Shown here one piece after another: positions 316 to 11,770 of a stretch of 64,000 nucleotides of DNA (position 1 is its first letter; each line of letters begins with the position of its first letter). Below the pieces are notes generated by a model. The model saw only the letters and a program-made list of their open reading frames with translations, was not told where the DNA came from and did not search any database. This DNA comes from Oikopleura dioica (Eukaryota > Animalia > Chordata), in the NCBI GenBank assembly GCA_907165135.1, contig OU015570.1:1-64000 (forward strand), given 5' to 3'. Both the position numbers and the translations under genes were made by a program.

Positions 316-1514
316 CTATTTCTTGTGACTCTTTCTTGATCCAGCTTCGAATCGGTCTGGCGGTATTCGACGTCGAGACGATGTGCGCCGCGCATATTGT
401 TCCGGCAGAGCTGAAGTTTCTGAAACAGGTTTTACCTCGGGCTCCGCGGCTGAATCTTGAATTTGTTTCATCAGTTCTGGGTCGAGCTCAGCCGGGCGCG
501 ATTTGTGAAGAACACAATGATGACGATGCACCCAAGTAGGAGTTCCGCGAATATCGAGTTGTAGAATAATTCCATTGCTATTTAAACACTCGAACGGGCG
601 AGTCCATTGATTTTTGTTCTCCTTAGCGCTCAGTACTCTATTTAGCAGACATCGGTCCCCTTTTTCAATAACTATGGGTTTTACTGTCGATTTTCCCGCC
701 TCTTTGGTGGCGAGGTCTGCTTCCTCTTGACTCAAATTGATAAATTTCCGAGCACGAATGAGAGTTTCTGCCACTTGTTTTGAGTATGTAGCAGGACTTT
801 TCGCTGAAGGGTTGTCGGCTAGCTGGATTCCTTGAAATGATGGTTTTCGGCCATACAGTATTTCGAATGGCGACATTTTCGTAGCAGCATTTTTGCTTTT
901 ATTTATCATACTTACTACGGATGGCAAAATTAACTCCCAACACTGATTTTTCTCGAGAGTCATGCCAAAAGTGCCGATTATAGAACTCGATGCTGTCGTT
1001 CCAAGCATCCAGTAGATTCCAGTCTGAACGCGACATGAATATTATGTTTGATCCCCAACAAGTTGCAGAGCTCCTCAATCAGTTCATTTTTGAAGTGCGT
1101 CCCTTGATCCGAAGAGATGATTTTCGGAAAGTCGTAGAGAAGAATGTAGCGCATCAGCGCCCGTGCAGCATCCACGGCGCGGCAACGAGCAGTAGGATAA
1201 ACGGCAAAATGACGACTGTAACCACACATTACAGTAAGGGCGTAGTTTTTTCCAGTCTTTGATCTTGGGAGTGAGATAAAGTCGATGTATAATATCTCCC
1301 AAGGTCTTTGAGCACGATAAAGTACCTTGCGGTCGGGCTTGCCTCTTTGCATGTCGAGCCCCTTGAATTTCAAGCAAGTTGAGCATGAAGCGACGAATTC
1401 TCGGATTTGCTGTACCTGATCCGGCCACCACGCCCATTTTAGTTGCTCGCTTGTACGGTTTACTCCACCATGACCATTTTCGTGTGCTATTTTGAGGTAA
1501 TGAGGAACCAGCAA
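316..1514 (-). pseudogene. pol: Integrase (HHCC zinc motif, DDE core, C-terminal region), frameshifted near 1000
   Basis: ORF 978..1514 has HENGHGG..CSTC, RPWEILYIDF, SDQGTHF and ERQHR. ORF 316..1008 continues with SPFEILYGRKP, a typical gypsy integrase C-terminal motif. Confidence 0.92.
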
Positions 1515-1528
1515 TTTCGGATGGACGA

Positions 1529-2660
1529 TTGATCTTCTTTCCCCAGCTCACAGTCAAGCAGCCCGTTTCCGCGTCGACCTCGAGTCGGCTCCAAATTCGC
1601 AGAAATCTTTTTATGCCATTAACATCAGCTGGCACGGCCACTTTTCCCATGTCCACTTTTTTTAATTCGATTTTCAGAATTCGTTTACTCCAACGAACAA
1701 TATTATATGCAGATATCTAATTGATCTATGAATTTTAAAATATCGTGTCGTCACCTGAATATAAATGACGAGCCTACTATCGCCACTTGGATGATAAAAC
1801 TTACACGCCAATTCGTCACTCGGCTGAGTATCATTTTTCTTTCTGACCTTGTCCCACGGTCGCAAAAGCATATCCGCCAGAGTATTTGTTGAACCGCGAA
1901 TATACTGTACCGTGAAGGAATACTTATGTATCCGCTCTTTCCATCTAAATAGTTTGTCGTTGTTTATCAATCTTTTGTCCAGTGAAACCAGTGCTTTGTG
2001 ATCAGTAAGCACCAGAAATGGACGTCCGCGCAAATAATAATCGAATTTTTCTATCGACAGGAGTAGTCCAAGTCCCTCCCTTTCAGTGCTCGACCATTTC
2101 TGTTCAGAGGGTGACAGCGTCTTACTGAACACGGCAATCAATTTTTGCTTGTTGCCTATTTTCTGGATTATTGCTCCGCCTACTGCTACCAAACTCGCAT
2201 CACAAACCACAGTAAAAGGTTCGCTGAAATCCGGTAGTGAGAATACTTTTCCACTTGCCAGAATTCGCTTGGCATTATTAAACGCTGCTTCTGCGTCTTG
2301 ATCTCACTGGAATTCTTTGTCTTTTATATTCAGAAGTGTCAGTTGCTTCAATACTTCTGAAAATGAATTTTTGGCAATTTTGTCGCCGATATTGCATGAA
2401 ATCCATGATTTCCACCAGCTAAATGATCCAAAGACGCTCATAAGTTGCTTTCGAGTTTTCCGCGGCTGCATTTTTTGAAGAGCTTCCATGTTTTCTTTCG
2501 GAATCGAAATCCCATCTTTCGAAATTTCTCTTCCCATGAATTTCGTCGATCTCCTCCCAAAGTTACACTTTGCTCCGCCCAGCCGCGCGTCGAACTTTTC
2601 GCACGCCACCAAAATTTGTCGGATAACTTCGAGATGCGTTTCTTCGTCTTTTGAATGGCA
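1529..2660 (-). pseudogene. pol: RT C-terminal part and RNase H
   Basis: CHSKDEETHLE..KCNFGRRSTKFMGREIS (RT palm/thumb). ORF 1674..2210 has VCDASLVAVGG, EREGLGLL, FLVLTDHKAL and N..ADMLLR (RNase H). Several frameshifts. Confidence 0.9.
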
Positions 2661-3071
2661 TACCGTTGCGCTCTCACTTTTGCGGCGGTGAAAATCTCGA
2701 TCTGAAGCCCCATCAGATCGAGATTTAGCGCGAGGCGTGTATTTTCTGAGACGTACAACACCTACCACACTCCCCGCAGACCAGAGCTTTCCCGAGCGCG
2801 CACCAATCAGAGCGCGGCGTGAAATAAGCGCCCTCACTCGGAAATAACATCAAGAATGAAGGTTAATTAAAATAAACGGTTTTTTGACAGGATTAATGAA
2901 TTGAAAACTTATTTTTTTCTTTAAAAGGCGGTTATTTTATAATAATCTTTTAATAATATAATATCATAATAATAATATAGGTACATATAATGTAGTTTAA
3001 ATAAATTAATCGATTATTAAACTAAATTTTATTGGCTTTTCCACACTCAATCCCGGCTTCACCCACTTTAA

Positions 3072-3655
3072 CCCCTGCCCGCATATCGACCTACGCGTAG
3101 GTAAATTGACTTTTAAACGCGATTATCTCGCGATTGGTAAATATTTTCTATAAAGCTGACCCCCACATATCGGGCTACTTTTTAATGGAGAATCAGGATC
3201 TAAGGTCAAAATAACATTTATTCAAGGATTTAAGATTTTAGCAATTGAACGAAATTTTGATCTCGGGTCAACATGGTAAAACCCAATTTTGATTCAACTG
3301 TTCTCGGCAAGATCTATTTGATCAAATTAATGCTCAGTAGATAATAAAAGTTCGGAATTCTAAATTTTTACTGTATTTAGGACTGCATGAAAATATTTAA
3401 ATTTGTTTTGGACGAGATTTGGAGCGCTGACGACTTATTCTTTTATCAAAAATGAGTACTATTGAAAAGATGACATTTGTTGACATTTGACATCTGACAT
3501 TTGACATTTGATCATGTCCAGGAGAAAGCTCAGCCTTTAATCTTTCCATCCATGTCTTTTGGAAAATTTTATCCCAACTAAAAGACCCCAAAGGCCCGAC
3601 CTACGCGTAGGTCGATATGCGGGCAGGGGTGACAAATTTTTCATGCGGGCAGGGG
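3072..3655. mobile_element. piggyBac-type MITE (584 bp)
   Basis: TTAA at 3068-3071 and 3656-3659. Termini CCCCTGCCCGCA / TGCGGGCAGGGG, plus a longer internal inverted copy at about 3598-3630. Confidence 0.85.
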
Positions 3656-3659
3656 TTAA

Positions 3660-3960
3660 TCTTTGCTTAAACAACTTCGATCCTAGCTTTACAGACGTCA
3701 ATCCTGGTCGCTCCAGCGTCAATCCCGGCTTCTTAAGATCCGATCCGGGCGTCACTTTCTTCAATCCTAGCTTCTCAGATGCCAGTCCCGGCTTTAAAAT
3801 TTTCTTTTATTGCTTCTTGAATAATAATCAATTAAATTGACGTTGGAAAAGCCGAGATTGAAACTGATGAAGCTGGGATTGACGCTAAAAAGTCGGGGTT
3901 GACGTCAAAGAACCCGTGATCGACATTGGAAAATCCAGAATTGGCAGAATCCTGAATTGG
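3660..3960. repeat. Degenerate 21-bp minisatellite in forward then reverse orientation, with an inverted counterpart at about 6600-6750
   Basis: The motif (c/g)tcaatccYggc recurs every ~21 bp. 3669-3710 is a near-exact reverse complement of about 6670-6711. Confidence 0.7.
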
Positions 3961-4325
3961 CTATTTGAGAAAAAAGAAAAGGGTTGAAAATTCCAGCGAC
4001 GAGAAGCACAAAAAAATTTGGCGAGAAAAAGCAATCAAAATCGCGTTTATAAAGGACCATTTTATTGAAATGCACCAAAAATGGGAATTTTATTTAAAAT
4101 TCTAATTATTCCACCCCAGAATCTCATTTTAATCAAAAAATTTTAGGTTCAACAGTGTCCGTGCGAGACCCATTTTGGCCAAAACCGTGGGAAGCTCTTA
4201 AAAATAAAAATAAAAAAAGACCATAAGTCTTTTTAAAACTGGGACAATTCGAATTTTATAAACAATGGGTGTGGGTGGGGTTGGGGACTTAACTGAGATT
4301 GATCATCTCAGAGTTTCCAGCCATT

Positions 4326-6126
4326 GTCAAGCCCCTTAAATTAAAAATCAAGAATCGGGGCTGAGACGGCCCGAAGGGCCGTCAAGCCCCTTAAATTAAA
4401 AATCAAGAATCGGGGCTGAGACGGCCCGAAGGGCCGTCCAGCCCCTTAAATTAAAAATCAAGAATCGGGGCTGAGACGGCCCGAAGGGCCGTCAAGCCCC
4501 TTAAATTAAAAATCAAGAATCGGGGCTGAGACGGCCCGAAGGGCCGTCAAGCCCTTAAATTAAAAATCAAGAATCGGGGCTGAGACGGCCCGAAGGGCCG
4601 TCAAGCCCCTTAAATTAAAAATCAAGAATCGGGGCTGAGACGGCCCGAAGGGCCGTCAAGCCCCTTAAATTAAAAATCAAGAATCGGGGCTGAGACGGCC
4701 CGAAGGGCCGTCAAGCCCCTTAAATTAAAAATCAAGAATCGGGGCTGAGACGGCCCGAAGGGCCGTCAAGCCCCTTAAATTAAAATCAAGAATCGGGGCT
4801 GAGACGGCCCGAAGGGCCGTCAAGCCCCTTAAATTAAAAATCAAGAATCGGGGCTGAGACGGCCCGAAGGGCCGTCAAGCCCCTTAAATTAAAAATCAAG
4901 AATCGGGGCTGAGACGGCCCGAAGGGCCGTCAAGCCCCTTAAATTAAAAATCAAGAATCGGGGCTGAGACGGCCCGAAGGGCCGTCAAGCCCCTTAAATA
5001 AAAATCAAGAATCGGGGCTGAGACGGCCCGAAGGGCCGTCAAGCCCCTTAAATTAAAAATCAAGAATCGGGGCTGAGACGGCCCGAAGGGCCGTCAAGCC
5101 CCTTAAATTAAAAATCAAGAATCGGGGCTGAGACGGCCCGAAGGGCCGTCAAGCCCCTTAAATTAAAAATCAAGAATCGGGGCTGAGACAGCCCGAAGGG
5201 CCGTCAAGCCCCTTAAATTAAAAATCAAGAATCGTAGCTGAGACGGCCCGAAGGGCCGTCAAGCCCTTAAATTAAAAATCAAGAATCGGGGCTGAGACGG
5301 CCCGAAGGGCCGTCAAGCCCCTTAAATTAAAATCAAGAATCGGGGCTGAGACGGCCCGAAGGGCCGTCAAGCCCCTTAAATTAAAAATCAAGAATCGGGG
5401 CTGAGACGGCCCGAAGGGCCGTCAAGCCCTTACATTAAAAATCAAGAATCGGGGCTGAGACGGCCCGAAGGGCCGTCAAGCCCCTTAAATTAAAAATCAA
5501 GAATCGGGGCTGAGACGGCCCGAAGGGCCGTCAAGCCCCTTAAATTAAAAATCAAGAATCGGGGCTGAGACGGCCCGAAGGGCCGTCAAGCCCCTTAAAT
5601 TAAAAATCAAGAATCGGGGCTGAGACGGCCCGAAGGGCCGTCAAGCCCCTTAAATTAAAAATCAAGAATCGGGGCTGAGACGGCCCGAAGGGCCGTCAAG
5701 CCCCTTAAATTAAAAATCAAGAATCGGGGCTGAGACGGCCCGAAGGGCCGTCAAGCCCCTTAAATTAAAAATCAAGAATCGGGGCTGAGACGGCCCGAAG
5801 GGCCGTCAAGCCCCTTAAATTAAAAGTCAAGAATCGGGGCTGAGACGGCCCGAAGGGCCGTCAAGCCCCTTAAATTAAAAATCAAGAATCGGGGCTGAGA
5901 CGGCCCGAAGGGCCGTCAAGCCCCTTAAATTAAAAAGTCAAGAATCGGGGCTGAGACGGCCCGAAGGGCCGTCAAGCCCTTAAATTAAAAATCAAGAATC
6001 GGGGCTGAGACGGCCCGAAGGGCCGTCAAGCCCCTTAAATTAAAGAATCAAGAATCGGGGCTGAGACGGCCCGAAGGGCCGTCAAGCCCCTTAAATTAAA
6101 AATCAAGAATCGGGGCTGAGACGGCC
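4326..6126. repeat. 55-bp tandem satellite, about 33 copies, each with a GC-rich hairpin
   Basis: Unit GTCAAGCCCCTTAAATTAAAAATCAAGAATCGGGGCTGAGACGGCCCGAAGGGCC, with period 55 (4326, 4381, ...). Copies are nearly identical; the hairpin is GACGGCCC-GAA-GGGCCGTC. Confidence 0.97.
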
Positions 6127-7146
6127 TGTATAAATTTATTTTCAAAATTTAATTTATCTGTTCAGCTCAGCTCAGACAATAATCACTCAGCTCAGCTAAG
6201 GTCAGCTGAATCATTCACGAACATGATCTATTCTGCTTAGTTTAGCTCAGCTCAATGACCTCTAAAATGGCAAGCTCAGCTCAGTGAGCTCCGAAATAGG
6301 CCAGCTCAGCTCAGAGAATTTCTCACTTAGGGCGGCTCAGCTCAGCTCAGCAAAAATAAAGCCAAATTTGCAACTCTGGTGGGAGCTTGGAGCTGAGATT
6401 TTTGAAAATTTCGAACCCTGATCTTAATCCTGGGTTCATCGATTTCTATCTGGGCTTTTCCAACCATGATTGACATTCAAGAAGCATGATTTGCAACTGA
6501 GAAGCCGAGACTGAGGTCTGAGAAATTGGTTATGGGTTCCCAATTGGTAATGAGTCCGACCGTTTCCCAAAATGTTTAATTATTAGAATTAGGATTTTAG
6601 TTTGTGACGCTAGGATCGGCATAAAGAAGCCAAAATCGACGCTGGAGATGCCACAATGGACGTTCGAGTCACCAGGATTGACGTCTGAAAAGCTAGGATC
6701 GAAGTTGTTGAAGCTGGGATTGAAGTTGATGAAGCCGGGACTGACTGTGGAGAATCTTAATCAATTCACATCGCCTTTTACCCAACTTGGGGAAACAGCG
6801 ACTTTGGCAAACGGAGACCACTCGATTATTTTGTTTATAATAAGATGTTAAAAGACATATCAGTTGAGACAGCAAGAATATGCAGAAAAAACTGCACAAG
6901 AAAATGTCTTAATTACTTTTATAAATTATAATTATATTAAAGAAGAGTTTCAAATTTGCAAAGGAAGATTTTTGCTCTTCTTAGAGCGCGCTGCTCCTTA
7001 GCGCCCCCACAAGGCCGAGCCTCTGGTCAATTTTTCCCCTGCTTCGAGAATGTTACGTCATTCCGGGTAATAACCACACCGCAGGCCCAAGCGCAAGTGC
7101 GCCTGAATTTTTAGCGCACCGCCTCGCGAGTGAAATCGCAACGGTA

Positions 7147-8770: not shown

Positions 8771-9477
8771 CAGTGTGAAGCACTTTTAAGGCCGATTTTC
8801 GGATGACAGCGAATTTCAAAAGTGGCCTTAAAATGGATATTTTTTGTCCCGAGTCGGATGACAACAAATTTTTACCTTTTTTGGACAAAAAGTTATTAAA
8901 AATTAATAAGGCTTTCATCAACCTCTTGATGACGTCGCATTCTGTGTCGCATTCAGAAAAAGATCCGGGTTTACATTAAAGATTTCCTCGTCGAACATGA
9001 TCACTCGAACATCAAGGAAGAAGATCTCTTGGATCAGGGGAACGAAATCCTCATTAACATGAACCCTGCAATCTTCAAGCGATCCTGGCTCAACACAGGA
9101 CTACTTCAAGAGGATGATTTTGAAGAAAAAATCGAGCAGTTTGAAGATCTCGAGAAAGTTTTCTGGAGAAACAAGAGGAAAAATTGGTCGAGCATTTCCT
9201 AGCGTTTCAAATTGATGAAACACATCCTGCAACATTGATAGAGAGTATAAAAGTGCCTCAAGTTCAAGGGACAGACAATGCCAACGCAGAGAAGCCATTG
9301 ACTTCAAAATGGCCGGAGACGCAGTCGAATATAACTAGCTTTTTTAAGTGAAATTTTCGGATTTTGTATAACAATTGAAAAAATGGCCTTAAAATGGATT
9401 TTTCTGGGATGACAGATTTTGGGGATTTTCCGAAAAACTGGCCTTAAAAGGGTCGGCCTTAAAAGTGCTTCAAACTG
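8771..9477 (+). mobile_element. Internally deleted pogo/Tigger-like DNA transposon
   Basis: TIR CAGTGTGAAGCACTTTTAAGGCCGA / TCGGCCTTAAAAGTGCTTCAAACTG. TA on the left, AA on the right. The interior (about 8918-9220) translates to QPLDD..KIRVYIKDFL..AIFKRSWLNTGL, resembling the DDE_1 transposase C-terminus. Confidence 0.75.
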
Positions 9478-9570
9478 AATTTGATTGGAGGAAAACTTTG
9501 ATCGTACTGTGGGAGAAGGTCCCCTCCTCTTAGGCATAGTAACTGGCTCAAATGGCGGACAAAGTCCCCA

Positions 9571-9642
9571 GGAGAAGTAGTGCAGTGGTAGCACACCGGT
9601 TCATGAACACGGAGGTCCCTGGTTCGACCCCAGGCTTCTTCA
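9571..9642 (+). ncRNA. tRNA-like Pol III cassette in the 5' LTR of the TRIM (degenerate anticodon arm)
   Basis: Acceptor stem GGAGAAG/CTTCTTC, D stem GTGC/GCAC, T arm CCTGG-TTCGACC-CCAGG. A box TAGTGCAGTGG, B box GGTTCGACCCC, TTTT at 9647-9650. The anticodon stem has only 3 of 5 pairs. Confidence 0.8.
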
Positions 9643-9677
9643 ATTCTTTTCACTCGCCTTTGCCTGATCCTACAAAC

Positions 9678-9695
9678 TGGTGAAGACAGTGGGTT
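9678..9695 (+). promoter_or_regulatory. Primer-binding site of the TRIM (possibly tRNA-Leu)
   Basis: TGGTGAAGACAGTGGGTT lies 3 nt after the LTR end. Its complement AACCCACTGTCTTCACCA ends in CCA and resembles tRNA-Leu 3' ends (..CCCAC......A-CCA). The tRNA identity is inference. Confidence 0.7.
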
Positions 9696-9943
9696 GTCTA
9701 GGTAGCCAAAACAAACCCTAAGCTGAGATTGACAAAGGGTCAGTCAGTAGCTCAGGAGAAGCTGAAGGTTGGGAGGGTTGGTAGGCTTGCAACGGTTGGG
9801 GACCGTGGCACCAGACAAAGAACCAAAAACCCAAGGCGGCATATGTAAGACGAGTTGTTAGAGCAGTTACTAGGGGGAGTTGTGGGAGAAGGTCCCCTCC
9901 TCTTAGGCATAGTAACTGGCTCAAATGGCGGACAAAGTCCCCA

Positions 9944-10016
9944 GGAGAAGTAGTGCAGTGGTTAGCACACCGGTTCATGAACACGGAGGTCCCTGGTTCG
10001 ACCCCAGGCTTCTTCA
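9944..10016 (+). ncRNA. tRNA-like Pol III cassette in the 3' LTR of the TRIM
   Basis: Same as 9571-9642 with one extra T in the D loop. TTTT at 10021-10024. Confidence 0.8.
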
Positions 10017-10052
10017 ATACTTTTCACTCGCCTTTGCCTGATCCTACAGTAC

Positions 10053-10224
10053 CTGTTGCTTTTATTTTTCCACATCCGGAAAAGGTCATCTCTGTAGGTG
10101 CGATGTGTTTGTGAAGTGGAATAGGAATGACACTCAGCGGAAGAATACATTTGTCGCTCCCACTGTCTACTAGCGCGTTGATGTCCAACTTGTATCCACA
10201 GAATGATAACGTGACTTTTGTAGC
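10053..10224 (-). pseudogene. pol: Retrotransposon aspartic protease, N-terminal part
   Basis: ATKVTLSFCGYKLDINALVDSGSDKCILPLS... in frame with gag immediately after its TAA. Interrupted by the TRIM. Confidence 0.85.
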
Positions 10225-11328
10225 TTATGTGTTGCTTTGTGAAGTATTACTGTATGCTAATAATGCACATTTTTTATCAGCGCTTATCCAAAAATTCGAA
10301 TTCTCCACTGGCAATTCCTTTTCGTCAACTTTGGCAACCAGCGTCTTCGATTTCGATTCTTTTCTCTTTTCGTGTCGGAATCTGCAATCCTTGCCTTTGG
10401 TACAGTTTCCATTCTCCCAAAATTTGCAGTAGGGCATCTTTGCCTTCTTCTCTGCGTCGCTCTCTGTTTTCTTCGGAGAATCTTTCTTCTTATTGTTGAA
10501 ATTGCCCGGTTTTGATCGAGCGAAAAATACTGATCCCCCATTGGCTGATGTCTTGGAAATCAAAAATTCGATTTTAGTAGCCACCGTCGAAGCGTCGGCC
10601 ACATCCGCCCACTCGTTCGCCATCAGCGAGTGCAGTTCATTTTTAGTGTGCTTCAATCTTTCCGCTACTATGCTCGCAGAGAAGAAAGAAATCACATCTT
10701 CCGGCGCCGGCTTGTTGCAATCATCCTCAAGAGTCGAGCCTGGATTTTTCTTCTGCTTCGTCTTTTTTATTTGAGTCAGAATCGCTTGCTGTGCCGGCGA
10801 CATGCGGTCGTCGATTTCTTCGGCATACCTTTTCCATCCTAGGTTCGGGTCGAAATTAGTCTCCATCGCGCGCTGAAGTAGCTGGATGCTACTCAGTCCA
10901 CTGTCGTAAGTTTTTTCCATCCATTTCTTCAGTTTCTCCCAAGTATTGGTTTCTTCTGTCGCAGCTTTTAGTCGCGAATACGTACTTGGTTTAAATCGAA
11001 GCTTCACTTTCGCGCAAAATTTCTCTTCTAGCTCCACATCTTTGTCTATGTACAAATCGTACAACTGGTCAATCCGCGCAGTAAATCTTCTGGAATAATT
11101 CAAATCCGCCATTGCCGCCTCCGCACTTTTGAGATTGTTGGACTGATCACGGGTGAGCTCGCTTTCGATTTTAACTGATTGGACCGTTTTTGATAGCTTC
11201 TCGCGCATTTCGTCTCTCAGTTTCTTTTTCGCTTTCGTGTCGGCTGAATTTGGACTTTCTGAAGCTTCGATTTCTTCTTCTAGCTCTTTGATGGTGTCCT
11301 TGAGAAATTTGAGCATTTCCAGCGACAT
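10225..11328 (-). CDS. gag: Gag-like protein (367 aa) with C-terminal CCCH zinc finger
   Basis: Uninterrupted ORF directly upstream of the protease. N-terminal coiled-coil-like region and C-x7-C-x5-C-x3-H (CKFWENGNCTKGKDCRFRH). Confidence 0.85.
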   Translation of the reverse strand: MSLEMLKFLKDTIKELEEEIEASESPNSADTKAKKKLRDEMREKLSKTVQSVKIESELTRDQSNNLKSAEAAMADLNYSRRFTARIDQLYDLYIDKDVELEEKFCAKVKLRFKPSTYSRLKAATEETNTWEKLKKWMEKTYDSGLSSIQLLQRAMETNFDPNLGWKRYAEEIDDRMSPAQQAILTQIKKTKQKKNPGSTLEDDCNKPAPEDVISFFSASIVAERLKHTKNELHSLMANEWADVADASTVATKIEFLISKTSANGGSVFFARSKPGNFNNKKKDSPKKTESDAEKKAKMPYCKFWENGNCTKGKDCRFRHEKRKESKSKTLVAKVDEKELPVENSNFWISADKKCALLAYSNTSQSNT

Positions 11329-11344
11329 GGCGAAAAAATATGCA

Positions 11345-11770
11345 GTTACTGTGACTCGTTTAATATCTTGAATATTGAATTTTATTCAATTATCTGAGAT
11401 AACTCGTAATTAACACGGTGGAATGGTAGAAGACTCGGCTTACAATTGGGCCTGCGACGGATGGTGGAGAAGCTGGAACAATGTGACAACAAGAAGGACA
11501 ATGGACGAAGATCAAGCCACAGCTGTCTTGGAGAGGCGAAGTACCCCTGATCTGCATAGAAATACGGTCCGCAGCTGAGCACCTTTTGATCTTCCAAGTC
11601 CAGTAGTACTGATAAAATACTGTCCACTTAATGTAAAAACACTGTTCTTTTTACACTCATTGTTTCCGGCTTCTGTACACTCCCTATTGACTATGAGATA
11701 GGTTATCAATGTCTTCTTGCCAACTAATATTTTTGTGAAACGAAAATATTAGGATAATTTTGTTGTAACA
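11345..11770 (-). repeat. Candidate 5' LTR/leader of the gypsy element
   Basis: The minus strand starts TGTTACAACA at 11770 and has an AATAAA near 11380 upstream of the gag ATG. No second LTR is available for confirmation and no clear PBS was found. Confidence 0.4.

Follow-up and report, generated by a model that had tools for sequence, protein, structure and literature searches.

The first 64,000 nucleotides of contig OU015570.1 of the Oikopleura dioica assembly GCA_907165135.1, hereafter the window, contain at positions 9508-10048 a complete miniature LTR element of 541 bp, in which a 167-bp 5' LTR (9508-9674), a non-coding interior of 206 bp (9675-9880) and a 168-bp 3' LTR (9881-10048) follow one another on the forward strand. 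Both LTRs start with TG and end with CA, and their alignment shows two differences, a substitution (A/T, LTR position 139) and a T inserted in the 3' LTR; a GTAC target-site duplication flanks the whole at 9504-9507 and 10049-10052. The interior of this copy begins with AAC-TGGTGAAGACAGTGGG and ends with AGGGGGAG-T. The putative primer-binding site (PBS), TGGTGAAGACAGTGGG, occupies 9678-9693, 3 nt past the 5' LTR, and the G-rich polypurine tract (PPT), AGGGGGAG, occupies 9872-9879; no ORF was found in the interior. An earlier description of this DNA made by a model from the letters alone (the sequence-only reading) had proposed just such an element, complete with LTR ends, duplication, PBS and PPT, with LTRs one substitution and one indel apart and with no coding capacity, and each of these features was located and the LTR alignment reproduced. 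The 7-bp terminal inverted repeats that it also reported are present, but as an imperfect pair, TGTGGGA and TGTAGGA agreeing at 6 of 7 positions.

As for the surroundings, the window opens with a CCCTAA telomere repeat (1-110) abutting the degraded interior of a Ty3/gypsy (TOR) element at 316-3840 on the minus strand, in which integrase (978-1514) and RNase H (1674-2210) have broken frames; no 3' LTR lies between the telomere repeat and this interior. The OKI2018_I69 assembly of Okinawan O. dioica comprises 64.3 Mbp in 19 scaffolds and has TTAGGG telomeres (PMC8008620). Positions 4278-6200 hold about 35 tandem copies of a 55-bp unit, with GC above that of the surroundings and a strong AT skew. 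On the minus strand an ORF of 367 aa (10225-11328), weakly matching CCCH zinc fingers, ends 177 bp from the element, which thus sits immediately downstream of a gene. Over 8800-11400, the adjacent CCCH gene included, 0 reads came from four RNA runs carrying the same species label (three oligo-dT, one single-cell), which may stem from another cryptic lineage, and a marine metatranscriptome shared 7% of the sampled words of the stretch.

Each LTR contains a tRNA-like unit, at 9571-9642 in the 5' LTR and at 9944-10016 in the 3' LTR, where the inserted T sits in the D-loop. In the 5' LTR this unit is preceded by a U3-like part (9508-9570) and followed by a TTTT run at a Pol III terminator position (9647-9650, beginning 5 nt past the 3' end of the unit) and by a U5-like LTR end (9651-9674) that is invariant in all copies; the corresponding TTTT run of the 3' LTR is at 10021-10024. 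The Rfam covariance model RF00005 (tRNA) matches the two units at 50.5 and 50.1 bits, its gathering score being 29, and ARAGORN calls both as His(ATG). All pairs form in the acceptor, D and T stems (7/7 with one G-U, 4/4 and 5/5, respectively), while only 3 of 5 canonical anticodon-stem pairs are found and a 10-nt perfect palindrome, GTTCATGAAC, replaces the anticodon stem-loop at 9599-9608. The pairing counts agree with the cloverleaf of 72-73 nt with a broken anticodon arm that had been described from the letters, and the covariance model bears out its tRNA character at about 50 bits in both LTRs. Of the consensus A and B boxes claimed for it, the B box, GGTTCGACCCC (9621-9631), is borne out, but the A box, TAGTGCAGTGG (9578-9588), is one position off TRGCNNAGTGG. 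Such one-position departures of the A box occur in natural tRNAs.

The genome searched, 64,281,565 bases long, is assembled in 19 contigs, of which five are megabase-scale, and in it we found 10 single full-length copies that are 94-99% identical to the window copy, together with one tandem array and two solo-LTR loci. The family totals 27 LTR copies and about 13 interiors, a very low copy number; the single copies are 517-542 bp long and the tandem array 1267 bp. At 12 of the 13 insertion loci the 4-bp duplication is perfect, the remaining one being imperfect (AACC/ACCC), and four of the 12 perfect duplications are palindromic (binomial p = 0.005). The LTR pair is identical in 8 of the 10 single copies, from which recent movement of the family follows. 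The tandem array (C1:2724384-2725650) has the order LTR-int-LTR-int'-LTR-int-LTR, that is four LTRs and three interiors within a single GGTC duplication, with a 13-bp deletion in the middle interior, a pattern expected from unequal recombination. One solo LTR was found twice, at C5:16038752-16038917 and C5:16057306-16057471, 18.5 kb apart and with identical flanks and GTAC duplication, which points to a segmental duplication later than the insertion. Two copies of the same subfamily lie 2.3 kb apart in opposite orientation (C3:540168-540709, minus, and C3:542979-543519, plus), each with its own duplication. The search for further copies that had been suggested with the first description thus yielded a multi-copy family with distinct 4-bp duplications and solo LTRs, and the element is a real, recently mobile miniature LTR retrotransposon.

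A second, related family is represented by a 562-bp element at C3:260971-261532, 197 kb away, with 160-bp LTRs and a TTGT duplication; a solo LTR (C3:2378762-2378913) and an 82% identical fragment (C3:1449116-1449225) are extra copies of it, and this family, too, is present in very few copies. A tRNA-like unit that passes the Rfam threshold is found in its LTRs as well, with TTTT at a similar distance beyond it; a TATAAT lies about 20 nt before the unit, and the PPT of the element is of the G5 type. The interior begins with AAT-TGGTGGTAGCAATGG...GGGTTGTCTGAGG, the family 1 counterpart of the latter being ...GGGTTGTCTAGG, and on such sequence likeness the interiors of the two families are visibly related.

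Across the 27 LTRs of the first family the tRNA-like unit is identical save for one private insertion, that of the window copy. The presence of the cassette in every LTR excludes a SINE inserted in only some of them, an outcome that the sequence-only reading had named as damaging to its own proposal, and no stand-alone SINE family with the unit as its head was found in the whole genome. Genome-wide, only one gene resembling the unit lies outside LTRs, a stand-alone 72-nt tRNA-like gene (L017, C1:10853572-10853643) that is 80% identical to the LTR unit and scores 51 bits with Rfam. It has the anticodon UGA, a T7 terminator and the upstream sequence ATAAATAA, and is without a long variable arm and without any repeat around it; it may represent the source of the LTR cassette or a remnant of it.

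Twenty real tRNA genes sampled across the genome were used as a comparison for the terminator. In these the first T-run starts 1-6 nt past the gene, and the T4 of the element, at +5, therefore stands at a canonical distance. The first run is a T4 in 9 of the 20 genes, and in 7 of those 9 a backup run follows within 40 nt, a hint that in O. dioica Pol III may leak past a T4; the single T4 of the element is probably leaky as well. Taken with its terminator the unit looks like a complete Pol III gene. In the 5' LTR the promoter is separated from the PBS by the T4, and full-length Pol III transcription would thus need a putative read-through, leakiness being the very property that a full-length Pol III template RNA demands of its terminator. 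We rejected the avoidance of further T-runs as proof of a Pol III genomic RNA, as at the element's own low T content the probability of finding no run is about 0.6.

The distribution of variation within the LTRs is sharply uneven: among the 27 LTRs, 21 of 63 columns upstream of the unit are variable, as compared to 2 of the 105 columns that make up the unit and the rest of the LTR (Fisher p = 1.3e-8), and those two vary in the window copy alone. Five states (A, C, G, T or a gap) occur in the column immediately before the unit (9570). Errors of first strand transfer pile up at the U3/R junction, as in MLV and Ty1, and the five-state base accordingly suggests that the U3/R junction is here and that R would begin at the first base of the unit. 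From this we infer that the 5' end of the template RNA would coincide with that base, whether through transcription start or through RNase P cleavage.

Selection on the unit is indicated by covariation. In a set of five related units (that of family 1, three family-2 variants and L017, three of the five being close relatives) 96% of the acceptor, D and T stem cells are paired, as against 33-51% in slid controls, and two-sided changes occur in 7 of 16 stem pairs; the three stems therefore stay paired through compensatory change, as the first description had proposed to check. As the promoter boxes do not include the acceptor stem, selection seems to act on the RNA fold itself, and we infer that the cloverleaf stems are held by selection on the fold besides that on the DNA promoter boxes. 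Thermodynamic folding alone gave no significant z-scores. The palindrome in the place of the anticodon arm is 10 nt long in both families (GTTCATGAAC in family 1, GCTACGTAGC at the same place in family 2), and in the diverged family-2 fragment it reads ACTACGTAGT, preserved as a palindrome via a two-sided change, while in the anticodon region of the 20 real tRNAs even palindromes reach at most 6 nt. It is predicted to form either a short tetraloop hairpin or a 10-bp intermolecular duplex at -12 to -16 kcal/mol.

The sequence-only reading had interpreted the element as a Cassandra-like TRIM whose LTRs each hold a cassette of tRNA type, and the anatomy bears this out. It knew of no described animal equivalent, in which it was mistaken: TRIMs with tRNA-like LTRs were described as Helenus by Kojima (2024, Biology 13:119) and, with Cassandra and Ajax, placed in a proposed class, TRIMp3 (PMC10886601). 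Animal Helenus elements are distributed over six phyla, with 4-bp duplications, PBS types common with Gypsy elements and an apparent dependence on Gypsy; tandem arrays were noted, and Pol III use was expected from the conservation of the boxes (PMC10886601). Their chordate hosts are coelacanth, sturgeon and paddlefish, and ostariophysan fishes, and no tunicate appears in the host table (PMC10886601). An existing description, which the sequence-only reading had listed among its refutations, is thus available for the kind of element but not for the O. dioica family itself. None of six short motifs from our two families occurs in the published Helenus consensus file, and a metagenome scan with a degenerate D-arm pattern returned ordinary tRNAs and no homologue. 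A literature search returned nothing on the element in Oikopleura, although an earlier annotation, for instance as a SINE, is possible in the study of oikopleurid repeats by Naville et al. (2019). The type is thus already described as Helenus, and the O. dioica family is its first tunicate member and not a new class.

The element shows all structural features that define Helenus: short LTRs, a short non-coding interior, a PBS beside the 5' LTR and a PPT beside the 3' LTR, and in each LTR a tRNA-like sequence with box A and box B (GGTTC, here within GGTTCGACCCC). It shares the 4-bp duplications of the animal families, and like Helenus it is multi-copy, with single copies whose size falls within 311-1263 bp, with tandem arrays and solo LTRs, and with a tRNA-like part that is unlikely to be a working tRNA. 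It departs from Helenus in its tunicate host, its very low copy number, the 10-nt palindrome in the place of the anticodon arm and a PBS that by k-mer scans is shared with no autonomous Gypsy element (one TOR copy having been compared directly); unlike in Kojima's families, moreover, the start of the PBS matches the 3' end of the element's own tRNA-like unit.

With Cassandra it has in common that it is a TRIM with a Pol III-type small-RNA gene and terminator in each LTR and that it forms tandem arrays. The cassette of Cassandra is 5S with a type 1 promoter, whereas here it is tRNA with type 2 (Rfam gave a tRNA match and no 5S match to the element at E up to 1), and Cassandra has plant hosts and 5-bp duplications. 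The tRNA-derived head, the A and B boxes, the shortness and the lack of autonomy recall tRNA-derived SINEs (SINE2). SINEs, however, are without LTRs, PBS and PPT, are moved by LINEs, and have a LINE-like or A-rich tail and duplications of variable length, in contrast to the direct LTRs and fixed 4-bp duplications seen here, and their heads usually lose the cloverleaf pairing that in our element is kept by compensatory change. The TRIM-like retrozymes of plants are likewise non-autonomous, with a structured RNA module in their LTRs and 4-bp duplications, but that module is a self-cleaving hammerhead ribozyme that gives rise to circular RNA, whereas the module here is tRNA-like and no hammerhead or other ribozyme family was matched in the element by Rfam.

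We consider it probable that the element is a Helenus-type TRIM of class TRIMp3, a 541-bp non-autonomous LTR retrotransposon of O. dioica that has moved recently and in which the tRNA-like unit likely serves as a Pol III promoter. Each LTR would comprise a U3 (positions 1-63), an R that starts with the first base of the unit, the TTTT run and a 24-nt U5. Carrying A and B boxes and followed at canonical distance by a terminator, the unit would act as an internal Pol III promoter and fix the 5' end of the template RNA. Given a leaky single T4, some transcripts would run on across U5, PBS, interior, PPT and U3 and end at the T4 of the 3' LTR, which we propose as the 3' end of the genomic RNA, yielding a read-through RNA of about 454 nt with a tRNA-like R at both ends. 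Selection would keep the stems of the cloverleaf, with the RNA fold mattering as well as the promoter boxes, and reverse transcriptase and integrase would be supplied in trans by one of the many Ty3/gypsy (TOR) elements.

Mobilisation by a TOR element is argued by analogy, on the basis of the 4-bp duplications and of what Kojima found. At least 150 integrase matches are present in the genome, and many of them sit in long open frames. We examined one intact TOR copy (L238:1474-7960), taken from the most numerous set of matches with identical scores; its LTRs are 256 bp long, its duplication (CTCT) likewise spans 4 bp, its PPT is GGGGG and its PBS, TGGTATCAGAG, differs from that of the element. 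Its LTR tips are weakly similar to those of family 1 (GATCCCTTCA as compared to GATCCTACA), with no likeness beyond the tips, in the interior or elsewhere. Scans with the 16-mer and 11-mer of the PBS gave matches only within the family or at chance level, with no autonomous element sharing 11 nt or more; a genome search with the interior found no helper, and the degraded TOR of the window has no similarity to the element. Of the autonomous gypsy element with the same LTR ends and PBS that the first description had suggested looking for, these comparisons showed a weak similarity of the LTR tips in one TOR copy and no element with the same PBS.

Alternatively, the tRNA-like cassette might be a passenger: an ancestral TRIM could have gained a tRNA gene or SINE head in its LTR, the element being transcribed by Pol II from its U3 or by read-through from a neighbouring gene, with the tRNA-like part having no role in transposition or acting only as a processing or insulator site. 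Kojima's proposal of a SINE insertion into an LTR as the origin of Helenus (PMC10886601) would fit such a history, as would the TATAAT of family 2, which could serve Pol II, and a T4 that would halt most Pol III transcripts ahead of the PBS. A mere passenger, however, would hardly be expected to remain invariant in 27 LTRs along with everything downstream while U3 varies, to have three stems held by compensatory changes across diverged families, or to have the hypervariable junction exactly at its 5' edge, and the genome has no SINE family with this head; we regard this alternative as quite improbable. Another alternative would have the retrotransposon spreading a working tRNA gene, each LTR unit adding a functional tRNA copy. 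Both ARAGORN and Rfam do call a tRNA and the terminator is at the canonical distance, but a palindromic hairpin with a loop of 4 nt and without U33 takes the place of the anticodon arm, ATG is not a standard His anticodon, and the score of 50 bits compares with 63-75 bits for the genome's 63 best-scoring tRNA genes. Kojima came to the same view for most Helenus families (PMC10886601), and we give this idea next to no credence.

A further possibility, which is a variant of the Helenus-type reading and compatible with it, concerns the primer: the processed, CCA-tailed RNA of the LTR unit might anneal to the element's own PBS and prime its reverse transcription. The start of the family 1 PBS, TGGTGAAGA, is the exact complement over 9 nt of UCUUCA+CCA, the 3' end of the unit, and that of family 2, TGGTGGTA, complements its own consensus 3' end UACCA+CCA over 8 nt, so that PBS and acceptor strand change together between the families. 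Apart from the elements' own units, genome-wide pattern scans turned up no canonical tRNA gene with TCTTCA, GCTACCA or GGTR..TACCA as its 3' end, the 20 real tRNAs reach at most 6 contiguous nt of the PBS, and a 13-nt complement of the PBS matched no tRNA gene in the genome; the PBS is shared by no TOR, and the acceptor stem is kept by selection in spite of lying outside the A and B boxes. Matches to the PBS complement with 1-2 mismatches were at chance level (17 were examined, none of them a tRNA at the matching site), and the candidate sites for a primer tRNA obtained with looser patterns were not tRNAs.

The match is nevertheless only 8-9 nt long, 3 of them the non-encoded CCA, and farther along the PBS departs from the T arm of the tRNA-like unit. 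From a primer in use, about 18 nt are normally copied back into the PBS. A decayed tRNA-Leu PBS, as in sturgeon Helenus families, is suggested by the frame TGGTG-7nt-GTGGG, and O. dioica has Leu-type tRNAs with a CCCAC T stem. Predicted duplex energies do not separate the candidates (for family 1, own unit -19.6 and tRNA-Leu -18.8 kcal/mol; for family 2, own unit -17.9 and a Ser tRNA -20.5 kcal/mol). Such complementarity is moreover absent from other Helenus families (PMC10886601), and what favours it comes from two families only. We accordingly think it unlikely, if worth stating, that the unit supplies its own primer. To the extended form of the idea, in which the unit would act besides as a Pol III promoter also as primer, and its palindromic hairpin (GTTCATGAAC, GCTACGTAGC or ACTACGTAGT) as a dimerisation or packaging signal, we likewise assign a low probability. 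If it were true, a retroelement with no protein of its own would supply its own promoter, primer and dimer linkage.

Helenus has so far been defined by bioinformatics only, its use of Pol III being an expectation, and O. dioica, a culturable chordate with a 64-Mb genome and about a dozen nearly identical, evidently young copies, offers a small and tractable system for asking whether a tRNA-type promoter can drive an LTR retroelement. Specific predictions follow from the hypervariable base at the edge of the unit, the compensated stems, the single canonical T4 and the PBS that tracks the acceptor strand. On a practical note, the LTR units score as tRNA genes (His-ATG with ARAGORN) and would inflate tRNA counts in annotation.
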